Assembly (NCBI GenBank): GCA_002269645.1
Contig: NIVC01000512.1
Span: forward strand, 14,472 to 78,471
Direction: 5' to 3'
From: Macrostomum lignano
Taxonomy: Eukaryota
DNA: 64,000 bases
Shown piece after piece: positions 13,442 to 47,559 of the stretch. How positions within the stretch are numbered: position 1 is the stretch's first letter; each line of letters begins with the position of its first letter. The notes under the pieces were generated by a model. The model ran no database searches. It was given only the letters and a program-made list of their open reading frames with translations, and was not told where the DNA came from. The translations under genes were made by a program, and so were the position numbers.

Positions 13442-14455
13442 GGCACTGACCCGTGTATTCCCCTCACTGCTTAGGAACCGGGTTTCGTAACCCTGGAGTT
13501 CAGGCGTTCAAGCCACGAGTTCACGGCAAAGTACGAATCGATGGCTATTATACTACTAAGTCTCGGGCTCGCCTTGAGCCTGTTCCGGCAGCAAGACATT
13601 TCCATTGCAGCATCAGTAACGAATTTTTCCCTGCAGAAGGCAATGCAAGCTCAAGCTTTCATCCGAAAATACCAATTATGTAGTAAAGTTCAGAGTGAAC
13701 TAATGACATAGTTTTTCTACGTGATCTATCGTTGGAAAATTGCCAGTTACAAGGCTAAATCAAGCCGCCTACCCTTCGAAGTCGGCAAACCAATATATGC
13801 CAGTTTATATAGATAGCTAGCTGTAATGAACTACTCACTAGTAGCTTTAGTGAACATACAAATACTTTTCAATGCAGACCGTCGCTAGGAATGCACGCCT
13901 GATCTTTTAGGCACCGCTACATGTACAACTCTCCAGTTCATTGTGCGTATCATTTATATCAGCTTCAGTTCCGCTGCACACAACAGCTGACTGATTCGAC
14001 TCACTCCCTTGTTCGATGCAATTGCTTTAGACCGGAACTTGATGACAAATCTAATTGTGTTAGTTGTTGCTTTTGGCATGTGTTATAGCGTAGTTTTTTA
14101 ATAAATTATAATGGCAATAAGTGTTACTCCATTACGGAGGACTCGTATTTGTTGTCTTTGATTTCTGCAGCAAACAGTTTCTTTGGAGTTTTTTATTGGC
14201 AAAGTCGTAGCCAACACAAGGACCACTAGGAACAATTCGGCCTTGGCCCGACAATGCTAGAATTTTATACTCGAAATCAACTCTTGGGCGTCACCCATTG
14301 GGCGATTAGTTAACATTGGATGTTTCAATCCCTTTCAGGGCGTTGCCATGGATTTTATGGTGGGGGACAAAGCCAAGAATTCTACATATTGTATATGTAC
14401 ATGACGAAATCCCTATATGTACATTATTTTCAGAATGGTGCTGTCAGTGATTATT

Positions 14456-15601
14456 TTAGCGCCGCAGGCACTCATTTAAGCGCCGCAGGCACTCATTTTA
14501 GCGCCGCAGGCACTCATTTTAGCGCCGCAGGCACTCATTTTAGCGCCGCAGGCACTCATTTTAGCGCCACAGGCACTCATTTTAGCGCCACAGGCACTCA
14601 TTTCATTTTGGCGCCACAGGCACTCATTTTAGCGCCGCAGGCACTCATTTTAGCGCCGCAGGCACTCATTTTAGCGCCGCAGGCACTCATTTTAGCGCCA
14701 TAGGCACTCATTTTAGCGCCGCACTCATTTTAGCGCTGCTGGCACTCATTTTAGCGCCATAGGCACTCATTTTAGCGCCGCAGGCACTCATTTTAGCGCC
14801 GCACTCATTTTAGCGCCGCAGGCACTCATTTTAGCGCCATAGGCACTCATTTTAGCGCCGCAGGCACTCATTTTAGCGCCGCAGGCACTCATTTTAGCGC
14901 CGCAGGCACTCATTTTAGCGCCGCAGGCACTCATTTTAGCGCCGCAGGCACTCATTTTAGCGCCGCAGGCACTCATTTTAGCGCCGCAGGCACTCATTTT
15001 AGCGCCGCAGGCACTCATTTTAGCGCCGCAGGCACTCATTTTAGCGCCATAGGCACTCATTTTAGCGCCGCAGGCACTCATTTTAGCGCCGCAGACACTC
15101 ATTTTAGCGCCATAGGCACTCACTTTAGCGCCGCACTCATTTTAGCGCCGCAGGCACTCATTTTAGCGCCGCAGGCACTCATTTTAGCGCCATAGGCACT
15201 CATATTAGCGCCGCAGGCACTCATTTTAGCGCCGCAGACACTCATTTTAGCGCCATAGGCACTCATTTTAGCGCCGCAGGCACTCATTTTAGCGCCGCAG
15301 GCACTCATTTTAGCGCCGCAGGCACTCATTTTAGCGCCGCAGGCACTCATTTTAGCGCCGCAGGCACTCATTTTAGCGCCGCAGGCACTCATTTTAGCGC
15401 CGCAGGCACTCATTTTAGCGCCGCACTCATTTTAGCGCCGCAGGCACTCATTTTAGCGCCGCAGGCACTCATTTTAGCGCCGCAGGCACTCATTTTAGCG
15501 CCGCAGGCACTCATTTTAGCGCCGCAGGCACTCATTTTAGCGCCGCAGGCACTCATTTTAGCGCCGCAGGCACTCATTTTAGCGCCGCAGGCACTCATTT
15601 T
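14456..15601. repeat. 21-bp minisatellite
   Basis: Unit GGCACTCATTTTAGCGCCGCA, about 55 copies, with occasional 18-bp deletion units. Confidence 0.97.
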
Positions 15602-16104
15602 TGTCGCCCTGAAGCAAAATTATTGATTTCCATAACAGGTCAACAAAGGTGGGGTGGGGGGGACAAACCATTAGCATGTCCCCCCATAGCTCTTACTGGG
15701 GGGACCACTTTCACTCTTCACCGATCGCCCCACCCCACATTACGCTCACGGTATTGTACGCTTTCACTCAGCTCATAAATATATCGACCCAGAGTATCTC
15801 GCTCTAGAGGCTGTTTCGTTTTTCATCGTTTCAATAGCAACAGAATATAGTTTGTCTTTCATCTCGAGTTATTCTAGCAACCAAAGAATATAGACCTAGT
15901 AACAAAAATAGGCCCTAACCATTTTTACTAGGTATCTAAAATTTTAATTATTCTGGAGACTAGATTGTCAATATTTTTTGTCATTTAATTTTGTGTTGAA
16001 AAAATAATTTTCTCCTATCTCGGTAGTGTTTTTTCATGCAATTGACCCCCCAAAAAAAAATTTACATGACCTTTGAGTTTTACGTCCTGCTATATACAGT
16101 GGTC

Positions 16105-19100
16105 CTGCACTTCCCCTCCCGCACTTCCCCCCCGGCATTTCCCCCCGGCACTTCCCCTCCCTCACTTCCCCTCCCTCACTTCCCCTCCGGCACTTCCCCT
16201 CCCTCACTTCCCCTCCGGCACTCCCCCCGGCACTTCCCCTCCGGCACTCCCCCCGGCACTTCCCCTCCGGCACTTCCCCTCCGGCACTTCCCCTCCGGCA
16301 CTTCCCCTCCCGCACTTCCCCTTCCTCACTTCCCCTCCGGCACTTCCCCTCCGGCACTTCCCCTCCGGCACTTCCCCTCCGGCACTTCCCCTCCGGCACT
16401 TCCCCTCCCTCACTTCCCTTCCCTCACTTCCCCTCCGGCACTTCCCCTCCCGCACTTCCCCTCCGGCACTTCCCCTCCCGCACTTCCCCTCCGGCACTTC
16501 CCCTCCGGCACTTCCCTCCGGCACTTCCCCTCCGGCACTTCCCCTCCGGCACTTCCCCTCCGGCACTTCCCCTCCCGCACTTCCCCCCGGCACTTCCCCT
16601 CCCTCACTTCCCCTCCGGCACTTCCCCTCCGGCACTTCCCCTCCCTCACTTCCCCTCCGGCACTTCCCCTCCGGCACTTCCCCTCCGGCACTTCCCCTCC
16701 GGCACTTCCCCTCCCGCACTTCCCCTCCGGCACTTCCCCTCCGGCACTTCCCCTCCGGCACTTCCCCTCCGGCACTTCCCCTCCGGCACTTCCCCTCCGG
16801 CACTTCCCCTCCGGCACTTCCCCTCCGGCACTTCCCCTCCCGCACTTCCCCTCCCTCACTTCCCCTCCCTCACTTCCCCTCCGGCACTTCCCCTCCCGCA
16901 CTTCCCCCCTCACTTCCCCTCCGGCACTTCCCCTCCGGCACTTCCCCTCCCGCACTTCCCCTCCGGCACTTCCCCTCCCTCACTTCCTCTCCGGCACTTC
17001 CCCTCCGGCACTTCCCCTCCCGCACTTCCCCTCCCGCACTTCCCCCCCGGCATTCCCCCCGGCACTTCCCCTCCCTCACTTCCCCTCCGGCACTTCCCCT
17101 CCGGCACTTCCCCTCCCTCACTTCCCCTCCGGCACTTCCCCTCCCGCACTTCCCCCCCGGCATTTCCCCCCGGCACTTCCCCTCCCTCACTTCCCCTCCC
17201 TCACTTCCCCTCCGGCACTTCCCCTCCCTCACTTCCCCTCCCGCACTTCCCCCGGCACTTCCCCTCCGGCATTTCCCCCCCGGCACTTCCCCTCCCTCAC
17301 TTCCCCTCCCTCACTTCCCCTCCCTCACTTCCCCTCCGGCACTTCCCCTCCCGCACTTCCCCCCCGGCATTTCCCCCCCGGCACTTCCCCTCCCTCACTT
17401 CCCCTCCGGCACTTCCCCTCCGGCACTTCCCCTCCGCCACTTCCCCTCCGGCACTTCCCCTCCGGCACTTCCCCTCCGGCACTTCCCCTCCCTCACTTCC
17501 CCTCCCTCACTTCCCCTCCGGCACTTCCCCTCCCTCACTTCCCCTCCCTCACTTCCCCTCCGGCACTTCCCCTCTCGCACTTCCCCTCCGGCACTTCCCC
17601 TCCGGCACTTCCCCTCCGGCACTTCCCCTCCCTCACTTCCCCTCCGGCACTTCCCCTCCGCCACTTCCCCTCCCGCACTTCCCCTCCGGCACTTCCCCTC
17701 CGGCACTTCCCCTCCGGCACTTCCCCTCCCGCACTTCCCCCCCGGCACTTCCCCTCCCTCACTTCCCCTCCGGCACTTCCCCTCCGGCACTTCCCCTCCG
17801 GCACTTCCCCTCCGGCACTTCCCCTCCGGCACTTCCCCTCCGGCACTTCCCCTCCGGCACTTCCCCTCCCGCACTTCCCCTCCCTCACTTCCCCTCCCTC
17901 ACTTCCCCTCCGGCACTTCCCCTCCCGCACTTCCCCTCCCTCACTTCCCCTCCGGCACTTCCCCTCCGGCACTTCCCCTCCCGCACTTCCCCCCGGCACT
18001 TCCCCTCCCTCACTTCCTCTCCGGCACTTCCCCTCCGGCACTTCCCCTCCCTCACTTCCTCTCCGGCACTTCCCCTCCGGCACTTCCCCTCCCGCACTTC
18101 CCCTCCCGCACTTCCCCCCCGGCATTTCCCCCCGGCACTTCCCCTCCCTCACTTCCCCTCCGGCACTTCCCCTCCGGCACTTCCCCTCCCTCACTTCCCT
18201 CTCGGCACTTCCCCTCCCGCACTTCCCCCGGCACTTCCCCTCCGGCACTTCCCCTCCGGCACTTCCCCTCCGGCACTTCCCCTCCCTCACTTCCCCTCCG
18301 GCACTTCCCCTCCGGCACTTCCCCTCCGGCACTTCCCCTCCCGCACTTCCCCTCCGGCACTTCCCCTCCGGCACTTCCCCTCCGGCACTTCCCCTCCGGC
18401 ACTTCCCCTCCCGCACTTCCCCTCCCTCACTTCCCTTCCGGCACTTCCCCTCCCGCACTTCCCCTCCCTCACTTCCCCTCCGGCACTTCCCCTCCGGCAC
18501 TTCCCCTCCCTCACTTCCCCTCCGGCACTTCCCCTCCCGCACTTCCCCCCCGGCATTTCCCCCCGGCACTTCCCCTCCCTCACTTCCCCTCCCTCACTTC
18601 CCCTCCGGCACTTCCCCTCCCTCACTTCCCCTCCCACACTTCCCCCGGCACTTCCCCTCCGGCATTTCCCCCCCGGCACTTCCCCTCCCTCACTTCCCCT
18701 CCCTCACTTCCCCTCCCTCACTTCCCCTCCGGCACTTCCCCTCCCGCACTTCCCCCCGGCATTTCCCCCCGGCACTTCCCCTCCCTCACTTCCCCTCCGG
18801 CACTTCCCCTCCGGCACTTCCCCTCCGCCACTTCCCCTCCGGCACTTCCCCTCCGGCACTTCCCCTCCGGCACTTCCCCTCCCTCACTTCCCCTCCCTCA
18901 CTTCCCCTCCGGCACTTCCCCTCCCGCACTTCCCCTCCCTCACTTCCCCTCCGGCACTTCCCCTCTCGCACTTCCCCTCCGGCACTTCCCCTCCGGCACT
19001 TCCCCTCCGGCACTTCCCCTCCCTCACTTCCCCTCCGGCACTTCCCCTCCGCCACTTCCCCTCCCGCACTTCCCCTCCGGCACTTCCCCTCCGGCACTTC

Positions 19101-20265
19101 CCCTCCGGCACTTCCCCTCCCGCACTTCCCCCCGGCACTTCCCCTCCCTCACTTCCCCTCCGGCACTTCCCCTCCGGCACTTCCCCTCCGGCACTTCCCC
19201 TCCGGCACTTCCCCTCCGGCACTTCCCTCCGGCACTTCCCCTCCGGCACTTCCCCTCCCGCACTTCCCTCCCTCACTTCCCCTCCCTCACTTCCCCTCCG
19301 GCACTTCCCCTCCCGCACTTCCCCTCCCTCACTTCCCCTCCGGCACTTCCCCTCCGGCACTTCCCCTCCCGCACTTCCCCCCGGCACTTCCCCTCCCTCA
19401 CTTCCTCTCCGGCACTTCCCCTCCGGCACTTCCCCTCCCTCACTTCCTCTCCGGCACTTCCCCTCCGGCACTTCCCCTCCCGCACTTCCCCTCCCGCACT
19501 TCCCCCCCCGGCACTTCCCCTCCGGCACTTCCCCTCCCGCACTTCCCCTCCCTCACTTCCCCTCCCTCACTTCCCCTCCGGCACTTCCCCTCCGGCACTT
19601 CCCCTCCCTCACTTCCCCTCCGGCACTTCCCCTCCGGCACTTCCCCTCCCGCACTTCCCCTCCGGCACTTCCCCTCCCTCACTTCCTCTCCGGCACTTCC
19701 CCTCCGGCACTTCCCCTCCCGCACTTCCCCTCCGGCACTTCCCCTCCGGCACTTCCCCTCCCGCACTTCCCCTCCCGCACTTCCCCCCTCGGCATTTCCC
19801 CCCGGCACTTCCCCTCCCTCACTTCCCTCCGGCACTTCCCCTCCGGCACTTCCCCTCCCTCACTTCCCCTCCGGCACTTCCCCTCCCGCACTTCCCCCCC
19901 GGCATTTCCCCCGGCACTTCCCCTCCGGCACTTCCCCTCCCGCACTTCCCCCCGGCATTTCCCCCGGCACTTCCCCTCCCTCACTTCCCTCCCTCACTTC
20001 CCCTCCGGCACTTCCCCTCCAGCACTTCCCCGCCCGCACTTCCCCTCCCGCACTTCCCCCCCGGCATTTCCCCCCGGCACTTTTCCTCCCTCACTTCCCT
20101 CCCGCACTTCCCCCGGCACTTCCCCTCCCGCACTTCCCCCCCGGCATTTCCCCCCGGCACTTCCCCTCCGGCACTTCCCCTCCGGCACTTCCCCTCCGGC
20201 ACTTCCCCCCCGGCACTTCCCCCCCGGCACTTCCCCTCCGGCACTTCCCCTCCGGCACTTCCTTT
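16105..20265. repeat. 14-bp C-rich minisatellite, about 4.2 kb
   Basis: Unit (GG/CG/CT)CACTTCCCCTCC, about 300 copies; internal 1.39-kb higher-order duplication. Confidence 0.97.
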
Positions 20266-20616
20266 CCGAGGGTAAGTTTTCTTAAGTCGCATATTAAACT
20301 TTTTATCCAATTTGGATGGCGGTGCTCACTGCACACACTGCTACAAATATCTACCCAAATACAGACTAGCTTTCTGTGCACTACCGGGTTTGCTGCTTGT
20401 TTATGAACTTCCTCTTTCACCAAAGTACACCACAATTTTGATCTGCTTGCTGTAGTTCCTTGTTCTAATTTAAACTCTGTCACGCAAAAAGTCACTCGTA
20501 CACCAGGGCCCATGGTGTACATGTGGCCTGGCCCACGCAGCCTCTCTATCCGGCCCTCGGCTTATTTCGACTCTTCGCAATACCAACCGTCCGCTCAAGG
20601 TTGGTGTCTCTTTTTC

Positions 20617-20718
<102 letters not shown>

Positions 20719-20989
20719 ACATTCTCTCTTCTCTCTTTTATCCCCACTTCTCTTTCCCCTTTTTAGTTCCGTATTGGAGCGCGAGTCCAGCTGTGCAAGT
20801 TATGGGGATGAAATTAAGCTAGCTTAGTTCCTTATTTTTCCTTTCCATGCTTCCATTCCACTTCATTGGCCAGGCGGTTACCCAGCCCCATCCGCACTGC
20901 TATGTATATGCCCTCGCGGAAGCTGAAGCATCCAAGTACGACTTGTATTGCACCATTTTGTAGATTCTTTCGTATCAGCCGCAGATGCC

Positions 20990-22414
20990 ATGGGAGGCTT
21001 CGTTTCTAAACAAAAGTCAGCCGAATTCAAATGCCTTTCTAACGTGCTGAAGCTCGTGAAATGCCTGAAGAATGAAGAATTGTGGCGCTCGATTCAATCG
21101 GTGGACACGGAGACGAAAAAGATCAATCAAAACGGTTTTAAAGTTAAGGAAATCCTTCCATTCGTAGACCTTATTTGTCTTGCCCAGACGACATGCAAAA
21201 AGCTGTTCGAACTTCGAATAGTTGCCGAACGGAAGGACAGAGCGCTCCACAAAGAAGCAAAAGATCTCTGTGCATGTGTAAATAAAAAGGCTTCACAGCT
21301 CAAATTCTGCGGCAAGAAGCTGGCTCCGGTCCTGGATGAACTTGTCAAGGTTTGTCTTAAGATTTGTGACTCTATCGGTGACTTGGATTCTCGCCTCCAG
21401 AACTCAAAGGTAAGCGAGGACGAACTGAGAAAGCTGCGTGCTTCCACAGGGCAGGCAGGCAGGGAAGCATCTGAGATCGATATTCCTGTCCGCAGCATTC
21501 GTCAGATGGTCGGCTACTTCAAAAAGATACCGCTGAAAACGCTTGATGATGCCAGGTGTGTGGACTTCGGAAGCAAGCGAATTTCCGGGCTGTACCAGGA
21601 TTTGATCGTACGAAGGTCGAAGAAGACAACCAATATGTGGAATAAGAAGTGTGGCATCTGTTCTGGTTGGGGTCAAGAGAGTCAAGATAGCCAACTGTCA
21701 GCGGCTCGACCTTCGATTCACTCTGTCGGAACCTGCTTCGTGTGCGAGGCCTGCGCCCTGGCGACTCTGAAGTCCTCCAACACAGACTATTTTCGAGATC
21801 GGACAAAAGCTATCCAGAAAGAAATCAAGCGGCTAACAAAAAAGTCTCCAAAATACGGGTACAAGGACAAGCTATCTGCGCTGACAACTGAGGCCGAGAG
21901 AGTGCCGCTGCTACCAAGCACTCTCGTCAAGAAGGTGAAGAAGAGCTTGAAGAAACTACGGAAAGCAAAAAACGAAAAGAAGCAAGTAATTCTATCAGAG
22001 ATATGCAGCAGCTTGGTCAGGCTGTCGGAGGCAATGGGAAATTTCCGGGACGGACTCGAAACATTTGAAGGCGAGGCGAATAAGCTGCTTAACGAAGTAA
22101 ACGGAGATGCCCGTATCAGGCAGGCCAAGGTTGAAAAAAATCGAAAACTGCAGGTTGAATGTATTAAAGCAGGAACTTCATATGCAAGTTCCAAAGCGGA
22201 TGCGGCACTGTCTCTCTCACGTCAGAACCAGTACCCAGATCATTCAGAAGCGCTGAAGCTCTCCACTCAGAAAGCTGAAGTGTCTGAGGACGCCCGGAAC
22301 CAGCTGACAGGTTTGGTGGACTCCGTCAGGTCTCTGGCCGACAGCGCAGTCGAGCTCTGCGAAGCTGTGAAGATAATGATCGTAGAGTACAGAGCTTTGG
22401 GCAATGAGTCATAG
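20990..22414 (+). CDS. Uncharacterised intronless 474-aa protein, copy 1 (N-myristoylation motif, helical/basic, CxxC...CxxCxxC)
   Basis: Uninterrupted ORF from ATG 20990 (MGGFVS: Gly2 and Ser6). Near-identical paralogue at 27830 with only in-frame indels; AATAAA at 22820-22825. No family recognised. Confidence 0.75.
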   Translation: MGGFVSKQKSAEFKCLSNVLKLVKCLKNEELWRSIQSVDTETKKINQNGFKVKEILPFVDLICLAQTTCKKLFELRIVAERKDRALHKEAKDLCACVNKKASQLKFCGKKLAPVLDELVKVCLKICDSIGDLDSRLQNSKVSEDELRKLRASTGQAGREASEIDIPVRSIRQMVGYFKKIPLKTLDDARCVDFGSKRISGLYQDLIVRRSKKTTNMWNKKCGICSGWGQESQDSQLSAARPSIHSVGTCFVCEACALATLKSSNTDYFRDRTKAIQKEIKRLTKKSPKYGYKDKLSALTTEAERVPLLPSTLVKKVKKSLKKLRKAKNEKKQVILSEICSSLVRLSEAMGNFRDGLETFEGEANKLLNEVNGDARIRQAKVEKNRKLQVECIKAGTSYASSKADAALSLSRQNQYPDHSEALKLSTQKAEVSEDARNQLTGLVDSVRSLADSAVELCEAVKIMIVEYRALGNES

Positions 22415-22812
22415 GTGTGAACATAATGATCGTAGAGTACAGAGCTCTGGATAATGAGTCATAGGCGTGAACATAATGATCGTAGAGTACAGAGCTTTGG
22501 GCAATGAGTCATAGCTGTGAACATAATGATCGTAGAGTACAGAGCTCTGGACAATGAGTCATAGGTGTGAACATAATGATCGTAGAGTACAGAGCTCTGG
22601 ACAATGAGTCATAGCTGTGAACATAATGATCGTAGAGTACAGAGCTCTGGACAATGAGTCATAGGTGTGAACATAATAATCGTAGAGTACAGAGCTTTGG
22701 ACAATGAGTCATAGGTGTGAACATAATGATCGTAGAGTACAGAGCTGTGGACAATGAGTCATAGGTGTGAACATAATGATCGTAGAGTACAGAGCTCTGG
22801 ACAATGAGTCAT
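22367..22812 (+). repeat. 50-bp array made of the ORF's last 13 codons plus stop (about 9 units), copy 1
   Basis: Unit ATAATGATCGTAGAGTACAGAGCTTTGGACAATGAGTCATAGGTGTGAAC; the first unit is the coding 3' end. Confidence 0.95.
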
Positions 22813-23744
22813 TGGTAGAAATAAAGTTTGCTTAGACGCGTATTAATGTTATGTTTGGTTAAAAAGCAAAACAATTTGATTTGATTATCACAATTGTCAC
22901 GTTTGATTATCACAACAATAGTTTTCTAAGCTTAAAGTTTATATTTCTCTTTCTAGTATTTATCATTCTTAGAATCGCAAATATACATGTTTATCCCAGA
23001 CAAAAGTAAAATCCTAGTAGCTTAAACCCCATTTGTCGATTTGTTAGTATCAATAGTTTAGAGTTAGACTTTAGACTTTGTCAGTTATCGTCTAACATAC
23101 CTTTTTCGAAGTTTTCGCAGTTTGTTTTCGTAATTTTTATTCATTTTTTCATTATTCGTGTAAATTTGGTCATCTTTGTTTCGTTGTGTTTGAAATTTTG
23201 TTTAGAGATGAAGTTTTTTTCTATCTAAAATAGAAATGAAGTCTTTTTAAATACACATTAAATGCGTTGCGATTAGACGTCTCACTGTTTTCATTTAAAG
23301 TCTAGAAATTGCAGGGGATTTAAGATTTCAAATTAAGGTCAAATTGTGGCGGTCAAATTGTTGCAGTCACATTGTGGCGGTCAAATTGAGGCGGTCAAAT
23401 TGTCCGTTTGTCGTGTTTGTTCCACTTCTCTGCCTTTCCGAAGAGGATTGCCGCATCCTTGCGTTCGAGTGCCTCCTTCGAGACAATCGCAGCTTCAGGG
23501 AAGAACGCCATCTCGGTCAGCCAGGCCGGTTGTTGCTAGGCGGTTGTGGGGCTAGTGCTTATATAGACCTCAGAAAATGGCATGATACCAGCAAACCTCA
23601 GCAAAACAACATTCCGCGCGCTTTTACCAAATGTCAAAGGGACAACCAGCGCGCAGATTTTTTTCTAAATTTGCATGCAAGAAGCGTGAAGATAACTTGG
23701 AGATAACTTGGATTTGGAGAGGCTTCTGGAAATGTAGATTATAC

Positions 23745-25806
23745 ATGTAGGGGTGGCCATTCCGAGTCACAACACCAGCAAGGGCGCCTTTTGAGACGTC
23801 AGTTGTGATGGTGACCTCCTTCTCCAAGGAATAAGGTTGCACCACAGGCTGCGACGTAATCTCTTGCTTAAGTGCTTCAAACGCTCGATTCCAGGCATCC
23901 GTCCACTCAAACGCGACGTTGTCCAGCCGTAACTCTTTTAGCGGCTTCGCTTTGCCGGCAAAGTTGGGGATGAGCCTGCCGAAGAAATTTACCAAGCCAA
24001 TGAAATGCTCTAGCTTCTTTTTGTCTAATGGGACAGCAATGCGTTTGATTTTCTCCACAAGTCGGTTGTCTGGCTTGATGCCGGCTGCGGAAATTTGGAA
24101 GCCAAGAAAAGAAATTTAATCGATCTCCTCAACGCACTTGGCTTCATTGATTGTAACTTGTTTCTCGGCTAGCCTGGTTTTCACGGAGCGCAAGCGCTTG
24201 TGCAGGGAGTCAGAGTTTTCAGCAAAAACCAGCACATCGTCCTGGTAGATCAAAACGCTCTTCATGTCGGAGAGAATCTGTTCCATTGTGCGTTGAAAAA
24301 TAAAGGACGCGTTCTTCATACCCATCTGCAAGCGTTTTACGCGGAACAGTCCTTTAGAAGTGTTTGTGATTGACAGCTCTTGCGCAGCCTCATTCAGCTT
24401 GATCTGCCAGTAGGCAGATCGCAAATCAACAGAGGCAAACTTTTTTGCGTTTTTCAACTTGGCCAGGAGATGCTCTACACTAGGAATAGGGTAATCCTCA
24501 GACTTAACTTTCGCATTCACATGTACGCTGAAATCAGCGCAAATTATCTGAGTGACCCGTCCTTCTTCTTCACCCATACAACCGGGGAGGAGTTGCTTAC
24601 CGGGCCGTCAACAGGCTTGATCACACCCAGTTGTTGAAGTCCCTCCAGCTCAGCGTTTACCACAGACTCCATAGCAATTGGCACAAGACGGGCTCGGCAA
24701 AACTTTGGGGCAGCGCCTTCCACGAGTGAAATCTTCGCCTCAGCGCCCTTAGCTCGTAATCAACGAAAGTGTTTTGTCCTCCTTGGGAGCGGCTTCAGTC
24801 ACGTTGAAGAGACTGTCAGATTGCAGAAGATCACGGCTTAGCAGACCAAACTGCTTCTCAGCTTTGACAACGGTCAGCTGCATGAGCGGGATGTAGCCGG
24901 CCACGGTCTATGGTAGTCGTGAGAGTGCCGAGGACCTTGAGATCGTGACCATCGTAGGCCTGCAAGTGGCGATGACATTTTTGGAGCGGTGGCCTCTTTA
25001 GAGACTCCCAGATGGTGGATGAGATGACAGTCACTGCAGCTCCCGTGTCCAGCTGCATGGGAACGCGGACCTCGCCGATGACGATGTTCTCCATATTGGC
25101 GTCGACGGAGTTAACTGAGCTTATCTCACCAACGTGAAGATCTTTTACATCACGAGGCGTCATAGAGCCTTCCATATGATGTGTCTGCTTGGGTCGAGAA
25201 GATCGACAAACACTAGCAAAGTGATTCGGCTTTGTGCACTTACTGCATGTTTTTCCATAGGCGGGACATTTCCCCACTGGATGCGACCTTCCACAGTAGC
25301 CACAGCCACGTTTGATGGCATTAGGGCGTCCCGAGTCGTTGTGATGAATCTCCTTGGATGACTCATGAGCAGAGTTCGCAATTGTCACGCTGACCCCGTC
25401 AATCGTTCGTTCGTTCTGTCTTCAATGAATCAAAACTGCAGTGATTGGCAGCTTTACGTAGTCTAGTTAGTAAGTCCGGCAATACTTAGCCTTCATTCTG
25501 TCGCAGAAAGTAGAATTTTGTGCGCTCCGCTAGCATAATTCGGGTCTTAGGCTGCAGGTAAGCTGTGATGGCCTCTTGTATTGCGTCAAATGTTTATGTC
25601 TCGATAGCTTTTGGAGCAAGCAGAGCTGTGAGCTTCTCGAGGGCTGGTAGGCCACAAATAGCGATGAAATTGTCCGCGATCCGTTTTCCATCTTCATTAT
25701 CTTGCCATTGTTTTGCTCGGGCAAGCGCACGAAATGCTGTCAGCCAAGTCACCAAGTTCAGTTCAGATTCAGTTAGATTTAAAGGTCCAAGGTGTTGCAA
25801 CGCCAC
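23745..25806 (-). mobile_element. Degenerate Ty3/Gypsy LTR retrotransposon gag-pol (no integrase), 3'-truncated
   Basis: gag N-terminus (WLTAFRALARAK), zinc knuckle (CGYCGRSH...CSKCTKPNHFASVC), protease LDTGA, RT (DLRSAYWQI, LQMG, YQDD), RNase H start (TTDVSKGALAGV). Broken into several frames with internal deletions. Confidence 0.92.
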
Positions 25807-26014
25807 TTATGTGACCGTAGCATGAACTAGTTGTGCAGGAAATAATTCATGTATGATAGTCTCAGATGAATACTCATCAGAGCCAAGCAAAAGCTTTAAG
25901 TTTGAAAACGAGGGGAGGCTGGTATTAAAGCAAGTTGACTTTGACAACGCGGGATTTATGAGTGACTAAGCACATTTGATTTGTAAAAAACTGCTTCGAG
26001 TATTACTCATCGCA

Positions 26015-26400
26015 TCAATAGATATTGCCCTAGCTCCACGAAAGTATTAAATTGCTAAGCTGCTGAAGTTATTGCTAAAATGAGGGCTGAGTTGTTGTTG
26101 TAAAAAACTGCCGATATGTATCGAAAATCGGTTAGTTAACCGTAATAAATGCTGAGTAAAAAATAGATTCTTGAAAGGATCCTTTATTTCAGTTTGCTGT
26201 GGATACTGAGGAGCCGGCCGAGAAGAGAACTGAAGACTGCTGAGGGGAACTGTAGATTGTCGAAACTATCATTCATGCAACTGCAAAGGGGACAAACTGC
26301 AAACTGCTGAGGTAGTTCCTCCAGACCATATAGATCATATCGTTTGGAGGATCATATCATAGAATGTAAAGATGTGAGATGTGCAGAAAGAGTTCCTCGC
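26015..26400 (-). mobile_element. Candidate 5' LTR of the Gypsy element
   Basis: Upstream of gag on the - strand: AATAAA (about 26185) in a pyrimidine-rich R-like stretch, then a degenerate PBS-like TGCGATGAG near 26010. No second copy in the window, so boundaries are approximate. Confidence 0.35.
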
Positions 26401-27829
26401 CTCCAGACCAAATTTCTGGAGGCAACTAAATGCTTCTAAGGATTAAGTGCAGGTTGTTGATTACATGGGAGATTCTCATGGGAGAATTTCTGAGATTTCA
26501 AGCCCCAGGGGGAATTGCTATAATGATGTGACTACTGGAATGCTGTGGCTGTTGGAGGAATTGTTAGGGTAGGGGTAAGGGTTAAACCATAAAAGAATTG
26601 GCCTGACAAACATGCATGTAATAGACTCATTTGGAAATTGCTAAGATCATAAGATGTCAAGGCTCATGGGAGGATATCTGAAAAGATATCCCATGTGGCT
26701 CACGGCTCATGGTAAATTGCCTGTGTGAAAGCTCATGTGGTGATCACTGTAACGATGTTAGCTGTGGCTCTTGCGTTATGGTTGAGACGCTAAGACTCAC
26801 GAGGGAATAGCTGAGATTTCAAAGGCTCATAAGGGAATTGCTGGAATTATTGGGCAGAGAAAAAATTCACTAAATATCAAGGTTCATAATTGGTTCATGC
26901 TGTGCCTCATGGGGGAGCTGAAATTCTGTGACTCGACAGGGTTGGGGTTCATCCATAAGACTCATGTGGAATTGCCAAGACATCAAAAGGTAAGTCGCTA
27001 GATTTTCAGGCTCATATGGAATGCTCATAGGGGAATTTATAATTTTTTGGGCTGAGGGGATTGCTGAAATGCTGTAACTCGGCTGCGGGTTAAGGGTTAG
27101 GGTTCAACCATACAACACTCGTCGTGTCAACCAAAAATTACTCTAATTGCTAAGATGTCAAGGGTCATGTGGCAAATTACTGCCGGGGCTGCTGCCCCCA
27201 GGAAATTCGGGTCCTGCACGCAATGGCGTGGTGAACTATCTGTGCAGTATGAGACTGGTATGGCCCTTATCCCAGCCAGCGATGCTCACACCTGCCTCCA
27301 CTGGCGGGCCGATGGCTCAAGAGACTCTGTCTCCTGCTTTTCACCTTGCAAGACGCACTTCGAAGGGTACTCGTCCCGTGGGTGTTAAGGCAGGCCTTCT
27401 TGGGCCTTGGGCCTACGTCTGTGCGCCCCCCCCCACCGCGTGTGTACGTTCTGTTTTGTGTTGGTTAGGTGCGCGCCAAGCGATCCACTGGCGGGGTGCA
27501 TTTTATTGCAACCGCGCTGCTGAGCAGGCAGTGTTTTTGCGCAGTTCTTTTTTTCGGCAGAAGAAAGAGAAGAGGGGAGAGAAGACAAAAGAGAGAATTT
27601 AGAGAGAGAGCTTGAGAAAGAGACACCAACTTTGAGCGGACGGGATTCATATTGTAAAGTGTCGAAATACCTGAGGGCTGGATAGAGAGGCTGCGCGTGG
27701 CAGGAGGTTCTGTTCGCGAATAGTGTACGCGAATCTATATATCCGCTTGAAGAAAAAATAATAAAGCCAGAAAAAAAATTTCGAGATTGCATTGCACCAT
27801 TTTCTAGATTCCCGACTGCCGCAGACTCC

Positions 27830-29329
27830 ATGGGAGGCTTCGTTTCTAAACAAAAGTCAGCCGAATTCAAATGCCTTTCTAACGTGCTGAAGCTCGTGAA
27901 ATGCCTGAAGAATGAAGAATTGTGGCGCTCGATTCAATCGGTGGACACGGAGACGAAAAAGATCAATCCAAAAGATTTTAAAGTTAAGGAAATCCTTCCA
28001 TTCGTAGACCTTATTTGTCTTGCCCAGACGACATGCAAAAAGCTGTTCGAACTTCGAATAGTTGCCGAACGGAAGGACAGAGCGCTCCACAAAGAAGCAA
28101 AAGATCTCTGTTCAGGTGTAAATAAAAAGGCTTCACAGCTCAAATTCTGCGGCAAGAAGCTGGCTCCGATCCTGGATGAACTCGTCAAGGTTTGTCTTAA
28201 GATTCGTGACTCTATCGGTGACTTGGATTCTCGCCTCCAGAACTCAAAGGTAAGCGAGGACGAACTGAGAAAGCTGCGTGCTTCCACCGGGCAGGCAGGC
28301 AGGGAAGCATCTGAGATCGATAGTCCTATCCGCAGCATTCGTCAGATGGTCGGCTACTTCAAAAAGATACCACCGAGAACGCTTGATGATGCCAGGTGTG
28401 TGGACTTCGGAAGCAAGCGAATTGCCGGGCTGTACCAGGATTTGATCGTACGAAGGTCGAAGAGGACAACCAATATGTGGAATAAGAAGTGTGGCATCTG
28501 TTCTGGTTGGGGTCAAGAGAGTCAAGGAGATCAAGAGAGTCAAGGAGGTCAAGAGAGTCAAGTGGGTCAAGAGAGTCAAGAGAACCAACTGTCAGCGGCT
28601 CGACCTTCGATTCACTCTGTCGGAACCTGCTTCATGTGCGAGGCCTGCGCCCTGGCGACTCTGAAGTCCTCCAACACAGACTATTTTCGAGATCGGACAC
28701 AAGCTATCCAGAAAGAAATCAAGCGGCTTACAAAAAAGTCTCCAAAATACGGGTACAAGGACAAGCTATCTGCGCTGACAACTGTGGCCGAGAGAGTGCC
28801 GCTGCTACCAAGCACCACTCTTAAATCGAACACTCTCGTCAAGAAGGTGAAGAAGAGCTTGAAGAAACTACGGAAAGCAAAAAACGAAAAGAATAAGCAA
28901 GTAATTCTATCAGAGATATGCAGCAGCTTGGTCAGGCTGTCGGAGGCAATGGGAAATTTCCGGGACGGACTCGAAACATTTGTAGGCGAGGCGAAGAAGT
29001 TGGTAAACGAAATAAACGGAGATGCCCGTATCAGGCAGGCCAAGGTTGAAACAAATCGAAAACTGCAGGTTAAATGTATTAAAGCAGGAACTTCATATGC
29101 AAGTTCCAAAGCGGATGCGGCACTGTCTCTCTCACGTCAGAACCAGTACCCGGATAATTCAGAAGCGCTGAAGCTCTCCACTCAGAAAGCTGAAGTGTCT
29201 GAGGACGCCCGGAACCAGCTGACAGGTTTGGTGGACTCCGTCAGGTCTCTGGCCGACAGCGCAGTCGAGCTCTGCGAAGCTGTGAAGATAATGATCGTAG
29301 AGTACAGAGCTTTGGAAAATGAGTCATAG
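27830..29329 (+). CDS. Uncharacterised intronless 499-aa protein, copy 2 (paralogue of 20990-22414)
   Basis: Uninterrupted ORF; differs from copy 1 by about 26 amino-acid changes and in-frame insertions of 18, 6 and 1 codons; AATAAA at 30484-30489. Confidence 0.78.
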   Translation: MGGFVSKQKSAEFKCLSNVLKLVKCLKNEELWRSIQSVDTETKKINPKDFKVKEILPFVDLICLAQTTCKKLFELRIVAERKDRALHKEAKDLCSGVNKKASQLKFCGKKLAPILDELVKVCLKIRDSIGDLDSRLQNSKVSEDELRKLRASTGQAGREASEIDSPIRSIRQMVGYFKKIPPRTLDDARCVDFGSKRIAGLYQDLIVRRSKRTTNMWNKKCGICSGWGQESQGDQESQGGQESQVGQESQENQLSAARPSIHSVGTCFMCEACALATLKSSNTDYFRDRTQAIQKEIKRLTKKSPKYGYKDKLSALTTVAERVPLLPSTTLKSNTLVKKVKKSLKKLRKAKNEKNKQVILSEICSSLVRLSEAMGNFRDGLETFVGEAKKLVNEINGDARIRQAKVETNRKLQVKCIKAGTSYASSKADAALSLSRQNQYPDNSEALKLSTQKAEVSEDARNQLTGLVDSVRSLADSAVELCEAVKIMIVEYRALENES

Positions 29330-30477
29330 GTGTGAACATATTGATCGTAGAGTACAGAACTCTGGACAATGAGTCATAGCTGTGAACATGATGATCGTAG
29401 AGTACAGAGCTTTGGATAATGAGTCATAGGTGTGAACATAATGATCGTAGAGTACAGAGCTGTGTACAATGAATCATATGTGTGAACATAATGATCATAG
29501 AGTACAGAGCTTTGGACAATGAGTCATAGGTGTGAACATGATGATCGTAGAGTACAGAGCTTTGGACAATGAATCATAGGTGTGAACATGATGATCGTAG
29601 AGTACAGAGCTGTGTACAATGAATCATATGTGTGAACATAATGATCGTAGAGTACAGAGCTTTGGACAATGAGTCATAGGTGTGAACATAATGATCGTAG
29701 AGTACAGAGCTTTGGACAATGAGTCATAGGTGTGAACATAATGATCGTAGAGTACAGAGCTTTGGACAATGAGTCATAGCTGTGAACATAATGATCGTAG
29801 AGTACAGAGCTTTGGACAATGAGTCATAGGTGTGAACATAATGATCGTAGAGTACAGAGCTTTGGACAATGAGTCATAGGTGTGAACATGATGATCGTAG
29901 AGTACAGAGCTTTGGATAATGAGTCATAGGTGTGAACATAATGATCGTAGAGTACAGAGCTGTGTACAATGAATCATATGTGTGAACATAATGATCATAG
30001 AGTACAGAGCTGTGTACAATGAATCATATGTGTGAACATGATGATCGTAGAGTACAGAGCTTTGGACAATGAGTCATAGGTGTGAACATGATGATCGTAG
30101 AGTACAGAGCTGTGTACAATGAATCATATGTGTGAACATAATGATCGTAGAGTACAGAGCTTTGGACAATGAGTCATAGGTGTGAACATAATGATCGTAG
30201 AGTACAGAGCTGTGGACAATGAGTCATAGGTGTGAACATAATGATCGTAGAGTACAGAGCTTTGGACAATGAGTCATAGGTGTGAACATAATGATCGTAG
30301 AGTACAGAACTCTGGACAATGAGTCAAAGGTGTGAACATAATGATCGTAGAGTACAGAGCTCTGGACAATGAGTCATAGCTGTGAACATAATGATCATAG
30401 AGTACAGAGCTGTGGACAATGACTCATATTGTGAACATATTGATCATAGAGTACAGAGCTGTGGACAATGAGTCATT
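29283..30477 (+). repeat. 50-bp array made of the ORF's last 13 codons plus stop (about 24 units), copy 2
   Basis: Same unit as 22367-22812, plus a variant unit GCTGTGTACAATGAATCATATG. Confidence 0.95.
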
Positions 30478-31007
30478 GGTAGAAATAAAGTTTGCTTAGA
30501 CGCGTATTGATTTTATGTTTGGTTAAAAAAACAAAACAATTTGATTTGATTATCACAATTGTCACGTTTGATTATCACAAAAATAGTTTTTTAAGCAAGG
30601 TTTATATCTCTCTTTCTAGTATTTATCATTCTTAAAATCGCATAACTGCATGTTTATCCCAGACAAAAGTAAAATCCTAGTAGCTTAAACCCAATTTGTC
30701 GATTTGTTAGTATTTAATAGTTTAGAGTTAGACTTTAGACTTTGTCAGTTATCGTCTAACATACCGTTTTCGAAGTTTTCGCAGTTTGTTTTCGTAATTT
30801 TTTATTTATTTCGTCATTATTCATGTAAATTTGGTAATTTTTGTTTCGTTGTGTTTGAAATTTTGTTTAGAGATGAAGTTTTTTTGTATCTAAAAAAGAA
30901 ATGAAGTCTTTTTAAATACATATTAAATGTGTTGTGATTAGACGTCTTACTACTGTTTTCATTTAAAGTCTAGACATTGCAGGGGATTTAAGATTTCAAA
31001 TTAAGGT

Positions 31008-31218
31008 CAAATTGTTGCGGTTAAATTGTTGCAGTCACATTGTGCCGGTCAAATTGTGGCGGTCAAATTGAGGTGGTCAAATTGTGGCGGTCAGTTTGTG
31101 GCGGTCAAATTGTGGCGGTCAGTTTGTGGCAGTCAATTTGTGGCGGTCGAATTGTGGCGGTCAGTTTATGGCGGTCAATTTGTGGCAGTCAATTTGTGGC
31201 GGTCGAATTGTGGCGGTC
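31008..31218. repeat. About 14-bp minisatellite (GTGGCGGTCAAATT); shorter homologue at 23337-23402
   Basis: Marks the right end of the duplicated segment. Confidence 0.85.
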
Positions 31219-32378: not shown

Positions 32379-34187
32379 ATGGATCAAGCTGGTGAGTCGT
32401 TGTTATCTTCAGTTGTTTATGAAGTACGTGGTCAGGAGCGCAAGGCTCATGATTGGATAGTTATTAACACTAGCTCATAAGATGATTGCGAGGCTTTAAA
32501 GCGGGTCCTTAGAGATAAAAGCCCGAGGTTCAAACTATAACTTCTGAAAAGTGTGTATTGTTTCTCCTTAAGGTCAGTTTAGGTCAGTTTAAGCTCCTTA
32601 ATTGATACTTAAGAAGTTAGCAAACTGATTTGGCAGGAATACTGTACAAGCGTAGTTCATCAGAAATGTTATTGTATTAGTCGGCTCAGTGTCGGACACT
32701 GAGCGAAGTCGAAAATATTGACGAAAAAATTACCGAAAACGAACTAGCCGATGATTAGTTTTACGAGTACAACGCTTAGTTAATAACTGGACGCGCGTTA
32801 AGAACTGTTAACGCTGAAGAGTGCTGCTTGGAATTATCCATTTGATTGGCTGATGGTCGATTGTCGATGGTGTAGTTCTGTTTGAAGTTAAGTTAGAAAT
32901 CCCCATTGACTGCAGCAGCATGCAGCCACTTCAAATAAGCATCCTTAGTGATCTTGTACCCAGCTTTGGAGCGCACCATGTACGACCTATACAAATTGAA
33001 CGCCAATCCTCCTAAGCTCCTTTCGTGTTTCTATTTTTAGATCAGCGTAAAACCTTCACGCAGTTTAGTGACGTGACCCCTTTGTTTGACTCGACACCGT
33101 CCGGGGATGATGAATTTCAAAAGCTGATGAGCGAACTCTTTACTGAGCCGGGTGTCGAAGTGGAAATGATGGTACGATAAAACGACTCATTTGAATAGAC
33201 GTTCATTATTCATATACCACTTTCTTGACTTTCATCAACCAATTTTAAACTCGAACAAACAAATTTCAGAGTATTGAGGGCGATTATCCCCAGCTAGTAA
33301 CTATGAAGCGCCAGGTAGCGCAGTCAGACGCTCTGGGTGACGCATTGGCTTTTGTCGAAACGGAACCCGATCCGTCTACCTCTACTTCTCCGGAATGCCC
33401 TCCGGTAATCACAGAATCGGCAGCCGTTCAAATGACAGCCCAGCAGGAGGACTCGACAAAAGAAGAGTGCAAAAATTCCTGGCTAGAGAACCAGGAGCAA
33501 CAACCATCGACAACGTCAACGACAGCTGAGACGTCTTCAGAACGTTTCCACGATGTTGAAGTTAAAGTGGAGTACATGAAAGAGTGCTTGGGTAAGTTTG
33601 GGCGTTACAAGTTCACTTCTGTCTGCAACTCTGACCTAAATAATTGTAAAGCCCCTATTATTCACTCATGCGCACACTTGCATTTCAATTACAGCTCGCT
33701 ATGACAAAGAAGTCAAGGAAAATTCTTCTAATGGAAAGCTTCAGGTGCATCAGGTAGTCCTCTTTATATTGCTATCAACAGAGCATCACAGTGAGATGAG
33801 GTACCACCTTGACAACATTCTGGTATTCTGCGACAAAAACGGGAAGCCAAGCAACAGAAGAACGAATCATTTCCTGGCTAAAGACACGAAAACAATGGGT
33901 ACTGTGTGGCAGATTGTGAAGGAAAATAGGAGAAGCACGTATGACACGTTTGCTCGTGCGATGAGGTGCGTATTACAGTGAATTACCAGATTGTTCCTGC
34001 CACTTAAGTCTCTCGTGTTCGCATAAGCCTACTTTCTTCGCATTGCAGAGTTGGTCGCGAGAAACACAAGGACTATTTTGAGTACCTGGACACCGGTAAA
34101 GGATCAAAAAAACGAGTTTATAAGCTCGGTTCCAAGGGTCTGGCAGATATGAAGAAAATGGAAAGCATGCTGCCCAAAATCTGCTGA
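32379..34187 (+). CDS. Divergent ETS-domain (winged-helix) transcription factor-like protein, about 291 aa, 5 exons
   Basis: Exons 32379-32391, 33041-33171, 33270-33591, 33695-33965, 34049-34187 splice in frame with GT-AG. NGKLQVHQVVLFILL resembles ETS helix 1 (GQIQLWQFLLELL). WQIVKENRRSTYDTFARAMR has the same W/K/Y/R/R spacing as ETS1 [26 protein letters not shown] resembles the wing strand KRYVYRF. Acidic S/T-rich N-terminal half. The first exon is the least certain. Confidence 0.65.
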
Positions 34188-43300: not shown

Positions 43301-43611
43301 TGTCGGACGGCAAGTTCGAGCACGAATGGGTTGTTAATAAATTCCGCGCCGAGTTCGATGCCCAGTTTTACAGCCTCGGCCCGGTGGACGGCCGGCTGAC
43401 CGGAGCGCAGGCCAAGGACGAGATGACCCGGTCCAAGCTGCCGTTCCAGCAGCTGGGCAAGATCTGGAAGCTGGCCGATTATGACCAGGACGGCATGCTG
43501 AACATTGAGGAGTTCGCGCTGGCCAAGTATCTCATCCAGCTGCGGCTGGACGGCCACGAGCTGCCCGGCACCCTGCCTGAACACCTGGTGCCCCCAGGCA
43601 GCCGGCACTGA
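37318..43611 (+). CDS. EHD1: EH domain-containing dynamin-like ATPase (EHD1/RME-1/Past1 family), 6 exons
   Basis: Exons 37318-37481 (KLLPLEEVYKFHDFHSPALEDADF), 37971-38131 (P-loop GQYSTGKT, GPEPTTD), 38218-38364 (IVDTPGILSG), 38774-39016 (LFDAHKLDISDEF, VLNKSD), 41285-41760 (PEVARVYIGSFW, KLNDLIKRARLAK), 43201-43611 (NPF linker and EH domain LADYDQDGMLNIEEFALA). All junctions are GT-AG and in phase. Confidence 0.96.
38498..38665. repeat. 19-bp minisatellite in EHD intron 3
   Basis: Unit CTTTACCCTCCATCTACCG. Confidence 0.85.
39048..40190. repeat. 16-bp minisatellite in EHD intron 4 (GC-rich part)
   Basis: Unit GGTTGTGGAGTCTCAG and variants, about 70 copies. Confidence 0.95.
40198..40480. mobile_element. 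Possible MITE interrupting the 16-bp array in EHD intron 4
   Basis: Imperfect TIRs AAAGGCTGGAGTTCCGG / CCGGAACTCAGGCTTT around an AT-rich core; no clear TSD. Confidence 0.4.
40486..41170. repeat. 16/32-bp minisatellite in EHD intron 4 (AT-richer, degenerating part)
   Basis: Dimeric unit GATTGTGAGTTTTCGT-GATTGTGAACTTTCAG, decaying to the right. Confidence 0.9.
41758..42470. repeat. About 30-bp minisatellite starting at the EHD exon 5 donor
   Basis: Unit CTTCAGGTGCTGAAGAGGGGGCGGATGAGGG. Confidence 0.93.
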
Positions 43612-46845: not shown

Positions 46846-47559
46846 TAAAAAATGATTGATAATTATTTATAACTTCTACAGAGGTTCAGAAATATTTGCA
46901 GTTTAAAACAGTGTGAGAATTATTTGAAACTGAGCCAGTGCAACTCCCATTCAAGCGCATGCTGACCAGAGCAACTTGGCGCATTCGGAATGAATAAAAA
47001 GCTTTGGGCAAAAAAACAAAACAACTTTCTGGACTCTCAGCAGCTTCTATTCCTCATCGAGGCTGGGCGGGCCTGAATCCGTTTCGTGGGAAAATTAATT
47101 GCAAAAAAGGGAGGCCGGGGGGGGGAACTGACGCGGCCAGATTTCGAGGGTCGACGAGCAGCGCAGCTGCGACGGCGAGGGCGAGGGCGAGAGAGCGCCG
47201 AGGACCTGGGGGAGAGACAGAAAAGGATTATTTCATCTTTTGCCCCTTCCGCTCCGCCTGTCCCATCCTCGCTGTCGCACGCTACTGAGGGTGTGATGCG
47301 GGGCTTGCAGCCTCCTGCAGACCGATTTCCTGTGTGCCGCGGGTCAGGAAAAACGATGATGAGTCTGCGTGAGATGTCGGGCTTTAAGGCCGCTTCCTGT
47401 GTCTGAGCTGCCTACCCTACCGATAGGTCGCCAGCTTACTCCTCCAACTCGGATGCGAGTCGATGCGACTTCGGTCACGGCCACGCGCTGAGTGCACTTC
47501 TGCTGCTGCTGCCTTTTGGCTCTGGGCTGCTGGGCTGCTTACGCTGTCCCCAAAGACAG

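Follow-up and report, generated by a model that had tools for sequence, protein, structure and literature searches.

A 64,000-nucleotide stretch of contig NIVC01000512.1 of Macrostomum lignano (assembly GCA_002269645.1, positions 14,472 to 78,471 of the forward strand; called 'the window' below and numbered from its first letter) carries two similar single-exon open reading frames (ORFs), A and B. Our preferred explanation, to which we give a probability of about one half, is that they arose by a recent, local, DNA-level duplication of a single-exon gene that is restricted to its lineage and codes for a lipid-anchored peripheral membrane protein. What can be read directly, from the sequence or from structure predictions, are the ORFs, the unit in which they were duplicated, the substitutions and indels that separate them, their lack of relatives and a predicted helical fold.

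Two intact reading frames with a lipidation-type N-terminus

An initial annotation of the region had reported two single-exon ORFs of 474 and 499 amino acids, whose products start with MGGFVSK and contain both CGIC...CFVCEAC and the basic patch KKVKKSLKKLRKAK. Coordinates and sequences bear this out in both copies, the second Cys sub-cluster being CF[V/M]CEAC:

20990-22414, + strand: ORF A, 474 amino acids, single exon, start context GCC-ATG-G
27830-29329, + strand: ORF B, 499 amino acids, single exon
20990-21010, + strand: MGGFVSK, N-myristoylation-type start of copy A (pattern checked by reading the sequence)
21650-21754, + strand: central Cys cluster of copy A (CGIC, 24 residues, CFVCEAC)
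28490-28648, + strand: central Cys cluster of copy B (CGIC, 42 residues, CFMCEAC)
21929-21970, + strand: polybasic amphipathic helix KKVKKSLKKLRKAK of copy A, residues 314-327, helical in both models
28841-28882, + strand: polybasic helix KKVKKSLKKLRKAK of copy B, residues 338-351
28511-28580, + strand: 18-bp in-frame repeat coding for GQESQx in copy B (Tandem Repeats Finder (TRF), period 18, 3.9 copies)

Are these ORFs chance products? At this base composition, a 474-codon ORF has a chance probability of about 4e-12, and composition by codon position is strongly periodic (p ~1e-7), which together exclude a chance ORF. The start context GCC-ATG-G is common to both copies. In the program-made ORF list, ORF A begins upstream of this ATG, at a TTG at 20948; we tentatively place the coding start at the ATG because A and B are identical over the first 139 nt from there on, but 21% diverged, with a 4-nt indel, in the leader before it.

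Both proteins share the N-terminus MGGFVSK, in which Gly2 stands immediately behind the initiator Met, followed by a small residue at position 3, Ser6 and Lys7. The consensus for N-myristoyltransferase is G-{EDRKHPFYW}-x(2)-[STAGCN]-{P}, with Ser or Thr favoured at position 6 and basic residues at positions 7-8. G-G-F-V-S-K, as read from the sequence, satisfies this consensus, as had been proposed.

The two Cys sub-clusters are separated by the GQESQx repeat, present in 3.9 copies in B versus one in A. This variable length shows, as far as two copies can tell, that the spacing of the sub-clusters would not be critical.

Copy A has a weak-context, out-of-frame upstream ATG (window 20985-20992), 5 nt before the main ATG. 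This upstream ATG is absent from copy B and could lower the translation of copy A.

A duplicated unit wider than the ORFs

The duplicated DNA reaches beyond the ORFs. This point, the fact that the ORF ends in what is the opening unit of a minisatellite, and the spatial clustering of coding differences described below all go beyond the initial annotation. The unit has the following parts:

20943-23403, + strand: duplicated unit A (self-BLAST against 27787-31070, 94-96% identity, sharp ends)
27787-31218, + strand: duplicated unit B, layout identical to unit A
20943-20989, + strand: 5' leader of copy A, 47 nt, non-coding
22366-22816, + strand: 50-bp minisatellite of unit A, 9 copies (TRF, sequence, and tblastn of the C-terminal peptide)
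29281-30480, + strand: 50-bp minisatellite of unit B, 24 copies (TRF), its first unit overlapping the end of ORF B
22820-22825, + strand: AATAAA hexamer of unit A, directly 3' of the array
30484-30489, + strand: AATAAA hexamer of unit B, 3' of the array, at a position matching copy A
22817-23336, + strand: AT-rich non-coding 3' flank of unit A
23337-23403, + strand: 14-bp microsatellite (GGTCAAATTGTGGC) of unit A, 4.8 copies (TRF), at the 3' end of the unit
31005-31218, + strand: 14-bp microsatellite of unit B, 15.3 copies (TRF), at the 3' end of the unit

Each unit, 2.5-3.4 kb in size, thus runs in the same order: leader (43 nt in copy B), ORF, 50-bp minisatellite, AATAAA, about 520 bp of AT-rich flank and 14-bp microsatellite. 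The first 50-bp unit consists of the last 16 codons of the ORF and its stop, and we conclude that the array, which would form the 3' untranslated region (UTR), arose out of the 3' end of the ORF. A near-palindrome, GTACAGAGCTCTGGAC, occurs in each 50-bp unit.

Outside the unit limits, a comparison of the spacer and the outer flanks revealed no homology above shuffled controls, except for a repeat of about 150 bp described below. The 64-kb window holds two copies only, with no further paralogues or pseudogene pieces of the ORF. Since the homology continues for 0.5 kb past the AATAAA and there is no A-tail, the unit was copied at the DNA level and not by retroposition, and we rejected a retrocopy on these grounds.

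An 18-nt inverted match, 89% complementary, links codons 4-9 with the 3' flank (20998-21015 with 23196-23213 and 27838-27855 with 30861-30878). It is kept in both copies and may be due to chance.

Divergence between the copies and maintenance of the reading frame

Proteins A and B are 95% identical over aligned residues, with 26 replacements. Nei-Gojobori counts on the codon alignment, 26.5 non-synonymous and 7.5 synonymous differences, agree with the 26 and 7-8 or so obtained earlier by hand, and correspond to a dN (non-synonymous divergence) of 0.0246, a dS (synonymous divergence) of 0.0234 and a dN/dS of 1.05. The earlier statement that dN/dS is near 1 therefore holds as a point estimate, but 'fast-evolving' is not established: with 34 differences the 95% interval extends from 0.45 to 2.8, so that neither relaxed nor diversifying selection can be claimed.

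More telling about the maintenance of an orphan ORF, when a dN/dS near 1 from 34 differences cannot separate these two regimes, is the indel spectrum of the flank compared with that of the coding sequence, and this locus provides a worked example. There are three indels in 1425 bp of coding sequence (54, 18 and 3 bp, as annotated initially), every one a multiple of 3 and in frame, with all the extra sequence in B; the 54-bp indel corresponds to three added 18-bp GQESQx units between CGIC and CF(V/M)CEAC. The 3' flank has five indels in 518 bp (1, 1, 1, 3 and 2 bp), four of them frame-breaking. At the flank rate we would expect about 11 frame-breaking indels in the coding sequence and see none, with a P(0) of about 2e-5 that is optimistic in view of homopolymers, of a possible later coalescence of the coding sequence by gene conversion and of tandem repeats that change length without loss of frame. 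Homopolymer runs hold two or three of the flank indels, but are as numerous in the coding sequence (7 vs 6), and two of the three in-frame coding indels are unit changes in repeats with a period divisible by 3. A cautious expectation, allowing for homopolymers and for the lower divergence of the coding sequence, is 2-5 frame-breaking indels against none seen. This absence favours selection for an open frame, as far as two aligned copies indicate, less overwhelmingly than 2e-5 would imply. The lack of new stops is weak evidence by itself, since 34 random substitutions would leave no stop with a probability of 0.20.

Coding sequence has diverged by 2.4% and the 3' flank by 5.4% (2.3-fold; Fisher p 0.0018), in keeping with the recent duplication that had been proposed. 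Differences are clustered in the coding sequence, with 12 neighbouring pairs within 6 nt (P 0.00025), whereas those of the flank are not (P 0.52), a contrast that fits uneven constraint along the protein. Multinucleotide mutations are able to inflate dN/dS (bioRxiv 10.1101/165969). We rejected them as the source of the high ratio because isolated differences taken separately (3 synonymous, 11 non-synonymous) still give about 1.1. The replacements are more conservative than random single-nucleotide changes would be, though only marginally so (P 0.05-0.10). Overall, the reading frame looks maintained, with an amino-acid constraint that would be weak or patchy, and the data fit a protein in which constrained stretches may alternate with free or diversifying patches.

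Searches for relatives

We found no relative of either protein. A Pfam scan with E up to 1 gave three unrelated sub-threshold matches only, a PHROGs search returned noise only, and PDB sequences at E up to 10 produced no match. A word-indexed search of 5.8 billion proteins was equally empty, as were an exhaustive phmmer search of 1.84 billion representatives (at E <= 0.001) and searches of IMG/VR and JGI metagenome contigs. Exact-sequence look-up in public assemblies has neither protein on record, and a full-text literature search for the N-terminal heptapeptide MGGFVSK retrieved no paper. That the proteins belong to no recognizable family, as stated initially, is thus borne out by the sequence searches, as well as by the structure comparisons described below.

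How deep is this lack of relatives? A gene further downstream provides a yardstick:

37342-43605, + strand: EHD gene (EH-domain, dynamin-like ATPase), at least 7 exons, rich in G+C at third codon positions (GC3)

The best matches of a conserved exon of this gene, in diverse metazoans, are only 60-72% identical, which means that close relatives of the source species are absent from the libraries searched. 'Orphan' would then mean restricted at some depth below the sampled animals. On a related contig (L001) with the same EHD gene, there is no trace of the ORF. The earlier description of the region as intron-rich holds for the EHD gene.

Protein composition and predicted structure

Both proteins are rich in Lys, Leu and Ser and strongly basic (K+R 89-92 vs D+E 59-62, net charge about +30). 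They contain 16-18 cysteines, two of which differ between copies. No segment is hydrophobic enough to span a membrane, the highest 19-residue Kyte-Doolittle mean being 1.25, in the Cys cluster, and neither protein has a signal-peptide-like N-terminus as judged from its sequence. The polybasic helix KKVKKSLKKLRKAK is among the strongest amphipathic stretches. A search for internal repeats within the protein found none.

The full-length AlphaFold2 (AF2) model, built from a two-sequence alignment, is all-helical but poor, with a mean predicted local distance difference test score (pLDDT) of 48.8, and the Cys cluster of copy A falls in its low-confidence part. One domain is modelled better:

21755-22411, + strand: C-terminal elongated helical-bundle domain of copy A, residues 256-474 (AF2 domain model)

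For these 219 residues AF2 predicts helices of up to about 69 residues, with a pLDDT of 73.4 and a predicted template-modelling score of 0.62; this is the one usable model, the remaining four scoring pLDDT 42-54. Foldseek comparison of the domain model with PDB and BFVD left nothing at E <= 0.001. In PDB, designed three-helix bundles and components of ClyA-family alpha-pore-forming toxins rank highest (E 0.02-0.3, template-modelling (TM) score 0.3-0.47); the matches in BFVD, also non-significant, are phage tail proteins and other long helical proteins. On these models, the matches would be the generic return of any long helical bundle, and we treat them as a lead, not as a classification.

Proposed mode of action and its weak points

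We suggest that each copy is a compact transcription unit, made of a short leader, a strong-context ATG, 474-499 codons, a minisatellite 3' UTR and an AATAAA. Its product would be cytosolic, basic and almost wholly alpha-helical. After removal of Met1, Gly2 would be acylated by N-myristoyltransferase, and the myristate would tether the protein to the cytoplasmic face of a membrane. The polybasic amphipathic helix may help in membrane binding, and so may acylation of cysteines (Cys15, Cys25 and the central CxxC...CxxCxxC cluster); the cluster could instead bind zinc. The C-terminal 220 residues or so would form an elongated helical bundle serving as a scaffold or oligomerization module. Selection would keep the frame open, with an amino-acid constraint that is weak or patchy.

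Several observations weigh against this explanation. Expression is inferred, as are lipidation, membrane binding and any cellular role. Only about 47 nt upstream of the ATG are common to the copies, so that no shared promoter is visible. A dN/dS of 1.05, or about 1.1 with isolated differences only, is the value that a non-functional sequence would give. GC3 is 0.54-0.55 in the ORFs, as in the pieces of a retroelement lying between the units (0.53-0.55), and 0.61-0.89 in most EHD exons, so that by this measure the ORFs appear unlike a well-adapted host gene. The myristoylation pattern is expected in about 1% of random N-termini, given the protein's own composition, and the full-length model is of low confidence. 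Finally, a unit with such sharp borders and unrelated flanks could also be a mobile one.

Alternative explanations

Other elements close to the units enter into some of the alternatives:

20527-20676, + strand: (CT)n-tailed repeat, about 150 bp long, 5' of unit A and matching 27559-27704 in reverse complement at 81% identity
27559-27704, - strand: second copy of this (CT)n-tailed repeat, 5' of unit B, oriented opposite to the one near unit A
23624-25806, - strand: decayed, 3'-truncated Ty3/gypsy-type fragment in the spacer (Zn-knuckle/protease, reverse transcriptase (RT) and start of RNase H)

The 150-bp repeat, which lies less than 400 bp upstream of both units and occurs nowhere else in the window, may represent a small interspersed element, the remains, now inverted, of an ancestral upstream region, or the ends of some longer stretch of DNA. 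The gypsy-like fragment occupies part of the 4.4-kb spacer between the units. Pfam recognizes RVT_1 (8e-22), RT_RNaseH_2 (4e-9) and an aspartyl protease (3e-4) in it, in coding pieces between which the frame changes about four times, with at least one in-frame stop; in self-BLAST and Pfam analyses, integrase is absent, RNase H is cut short and no direct repeat resembling a long terminal repeat (LTR) flanks the fragment. It is antisense to the ORFs, has a Zn-knuckle region of its own and bears no similarity to them, and it seems to be an unrelated neighbour of the gene pair. A search with one RT piece brought up three short matches.

Could the unit itself be an uncharacterized repeated or mobile element, or belong to a multi-copy family carried by one, so that the ORF codes for an element protein in neutral decay and is still open through its youth? 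We find this unlikely, though worth serious consideration. Such an origin would account for two sharp unit ends set in non-homologous flanks, for a terminal microsatellite that varies from 4.8 to 15.3 copies, for the 150-bp repeat beside both units and for a GC3 equal to that of the retroelement fragment and unlike that of the host EHD gene. It would suit a dN/dS of 1.05 and a region rich in repeats and transposable elements, and the clustered differences could be micro-conversion from other copies. However, Pfam detects no transposase, RT, integrase, recombinase or helicase domain in the unit, terminal inverted repeats and LTR-type termini were not found, and self-BLAST shows no other direct repeats. 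No target-site duplication could be read at either junction of either copy, a weak test, as the 3' ends lie inside a microsatellite. The window has no more than two copies, side by side and with the same orientation, and there are no relatives among the 1.84 billion representatives or in viral or metagenome contigs. The contrast between coding and flank indels also argues for selection on the frame after the copies split. The initial annotation had considered a domesticated viral or transposable-element gene, a suggestion which finds no homology in Pfam, PHROGs, BFVD or IMG/VR, no terminal repeats and no target-site duplication to build on; the adjacent gypsy-like fragment is on the other strand.

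It is also quite unlikely, in our judgement, that the ORFs are without protein-level selection, now or ever, as a duplicate or retrocopy drifting towards pseudogenes that was left intact by luck and recent gene conversion. This would leave dN/dS indistinguishable from neutrality, as it is (binomial p = 1.0), and the frames could have survived without selection: the absence of stops after 34 random substitutions has a probability of 0.20, and two of the three in-frame indels keep the frame automatically, the periods of their repeats being multiples of 3. The 2.3-fold lower divergence of the coding sequence fits a conversion that reset its clock, and both the two cysteines that differ between copies and the out-of-frame upstream ATG of copy A are what drift would bring. 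Yet even the scaled expectation is about 2-5 frame-breaking indels where none are seen; differences are clustered in the coding sequence and not in the flank, replacements lean towards the conservative, and an ORF of 474 codons must have coded very recently.

A further possibility is a special case of the lipid-anchored duplicate that we prefer, and its probability is not to be added to those of the others: the proteins could be membrane-acting effectors (immune, cell-death or pore-forming) under diversifying selection, in which the lipid anchor brings an elongated ClyA-like helical bundle to membranes. AhlB, AhlC, SmhB, MakA, YaxB and NheA, alongside designed helical bundles, do stand at the head of the PDB fold matches for the C-terminal model, and clustered replacements at a dN/dS of about 1, tandem duplication and a variable in-frame repeat are compatible with such a role. 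We nevertheless consider it improbable. The matches are non-significant, with a high root mean square deviation, and typical of long helical bundles; four of the five AF2 models have low confidence; dN/dS does not exceed 1. With a maximal 19-residue Kyte-Doolittle mean of 1.25 there is no hydrophobic head, tongue or hairpin, and there is no signal peptide. A Pfam scan of the ORFs and of their neighbours in the window found no immune-type domain or neighbour. An immune or cell-death effector, as put forward initially, thus gains no domain match, no significant fold match and no informative neighbour. The 'secreted-toxin-like' variant of that proposal conflicts with the sequence, which has neither a signal peptide nor a hydrophobic segment, and N-myristoylation is a cytosolic modification.

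A bolder form of the lipid-anchored reading, which we regard as distinctly improbable, is that of a new family of lipid-anchored, elongated helical-bundle proteins acting from the cytosolic side on host or pathogen membranes, diversified patchwise in an arms race, as clustered replacements and the variable GQESQ spacer would reflect, and kept in tandem for that reason. If true, the family would be an invertebrate counterpart of helical cell-death and pore-forming executioners, with no sequence link to them.

The units could also be the LTRs of a minus-strand gypsy-like element lying between them, the ORF being an antisense ORF within the LTR, as direct repeats of about 95% identity do surround 4.4 kb with gag-like, protease, RT and RNase H pieces. 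We rejected this very improbable arrangement. Between the units, RNase H is incomplete and integrase missing altogether, leaving pol without its 3' half, and a reading of the junctions showed neither TG...CA termini nor a target-site duplication, nor any sequence resembling a primer-binding site or an uninterrupted polypurine tract. In addition, the repeat ends in a variable microsatellite and the frame of the ORF is maintained, unlike those of the internal genes.

That two haplotypes of one gene were set in tandem by the assembler, a caveat of the initial annotation that 95% protein identity and a repeat-rich region hard to assemble might have recommended, is extremely improbable and was rejected, since the window is without Ns, the 4.4-kb spacer and outer flanks are non-homologous (whereas haplotigs would be collinear past the gene), the flank is 5.4% diverged and the repeat numbers differ (9 vs 24 and 4.8 vs 15.3).

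Comparison with known systems

A close parallel is with taxonomically restricted orphan genes that occur in animal genomes as young tandem duplicates, which share with ORFs A and B the lack of homologues, a single exon, atypical codon usage, local duplication, weak amino-acid constraint and an intact frame. Most orphan genes are short, whereas A and B are long (474-499 amino acids), predicted to be helical throughout and endowed with a clear lipidation-type motif. Length, structure and motif together make a de novo origin unlikely, and extreme divergence or an unsampled lineage more plausible.

The N-terminus recalls Src-family kinases and MARCKS, which use a myristoyl-electrostatic mode of membrane binding: Met-Gly, Ser6, Lys7, a strongly basic protein and a Lys-rich amphipathic stretch are common features. 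There is no sequence similarity, however. In the Src family and MARCKS, the basic cluster stands beside the anchor or in a disordered effector domain, whereas here it lies 313-337 residues from the N-terminus and is predicted to be helical. We found no disordered effector segment of the MARCKS type, the patch at residues 314-327 (copy A) or 338-351 (copy B) being helical in the models.

In SNAP-25-type proteins, two helical halves are joined by a linker with a palmitoylated Cys cluster. The ORF proteins are similar in having a central CxxC...CxxCxxC cluster in a flexible, variable linker between helical halves, and no transmembrane segment. This likeness is a lead only. The ORF protein is about twice as long, its syntaxin/t-SNARE fold matches are non-significant, and the Pfam scan of the ORF proteins contains no SNARE family.

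With ClyA-family toxins (AhlB/AhlC, SmhB, MakA, YaxB and NheA), the likeness is that of an elongated bundle of very long helices, as reflected in the top Foldseek matches. These matches have E >= 0.02 and TM < 0.5, come from one model of pLDDT 73 and are equalled by designed bundles, and the ORF proteins have no membrane-inserting hydrophobic segment or secretion signal. ClyA-family toxins are bacterial and secreted; the ORF proteins are eukaryotic and, to judge from their motif, cytosolic.

Gag proteins, lastly, can combine a myristoylation-type N-terminus, a helical fold, a Cys cluster and an intron-free gene, and a retroelement fragment lies nearby. Neither Pfam (E up to 1) nor PDB sequences (E up to 10) gave a gag, capsid or zf-CCHC match. 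The Cys spacing is CGIC, 24 or 42 residues, CF(V/M)CEAC, and not CX2CX4HX4C, and a His in register is lacking. Nor is there a pol further along this strand, its place being taken by the minisatellite, the AATAAA and the AT-rich flank, and the RT fragment is on the minus strand.

Implications

Invertebrate genomes commonly contain tandem pairs of long orphan genes, and the present evidence describes an ordinary orphan-gene duplicate, not a new biological system. What distinguishes this pair is the combination of its length, a clean lipidation motif, a helical-bundle prediction and a total lack of relatives. If expressed, the proteins would be a long, well-folded and probably lipid-anchored family without detectable relatives, and the locus would be a useful case of how genes confined to one lineage originate, become duplicated and change in unstable, repeat-rich regions of chromosomes.

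Surroundings in the window

Directly to the left of unit A lies a 4.2-kb satellite (16103-20262) of about 300 copies of a 14-bp GC-rich unit, with a GC content of about 0.69 and a strong excess of C over G; in several of its frames, spurious ORFs extend over about 1,400 codons. Between copy B and EHD, the ORF 33745-33981 (+ strand) matches an Ets domain below the threshold (E 2.5e-4; 21.8 bits, where 26.9 are required) and might belong to an ETS-type gene as an exon or be a relic of one. Scanning the window for Rfam families and tRNAs found nothing. An intron of the EHD gene, from about 39050 to 41280, is filled by two minisatellite arrays, and minisatellites of many periods are spread across the window (6436-8276, 14453-15601, 47548-48340, 50110-50648, 51398-52340, 58548-60583 and others), a richness which suggests an unstable, recombination-prone region of the chromosome.

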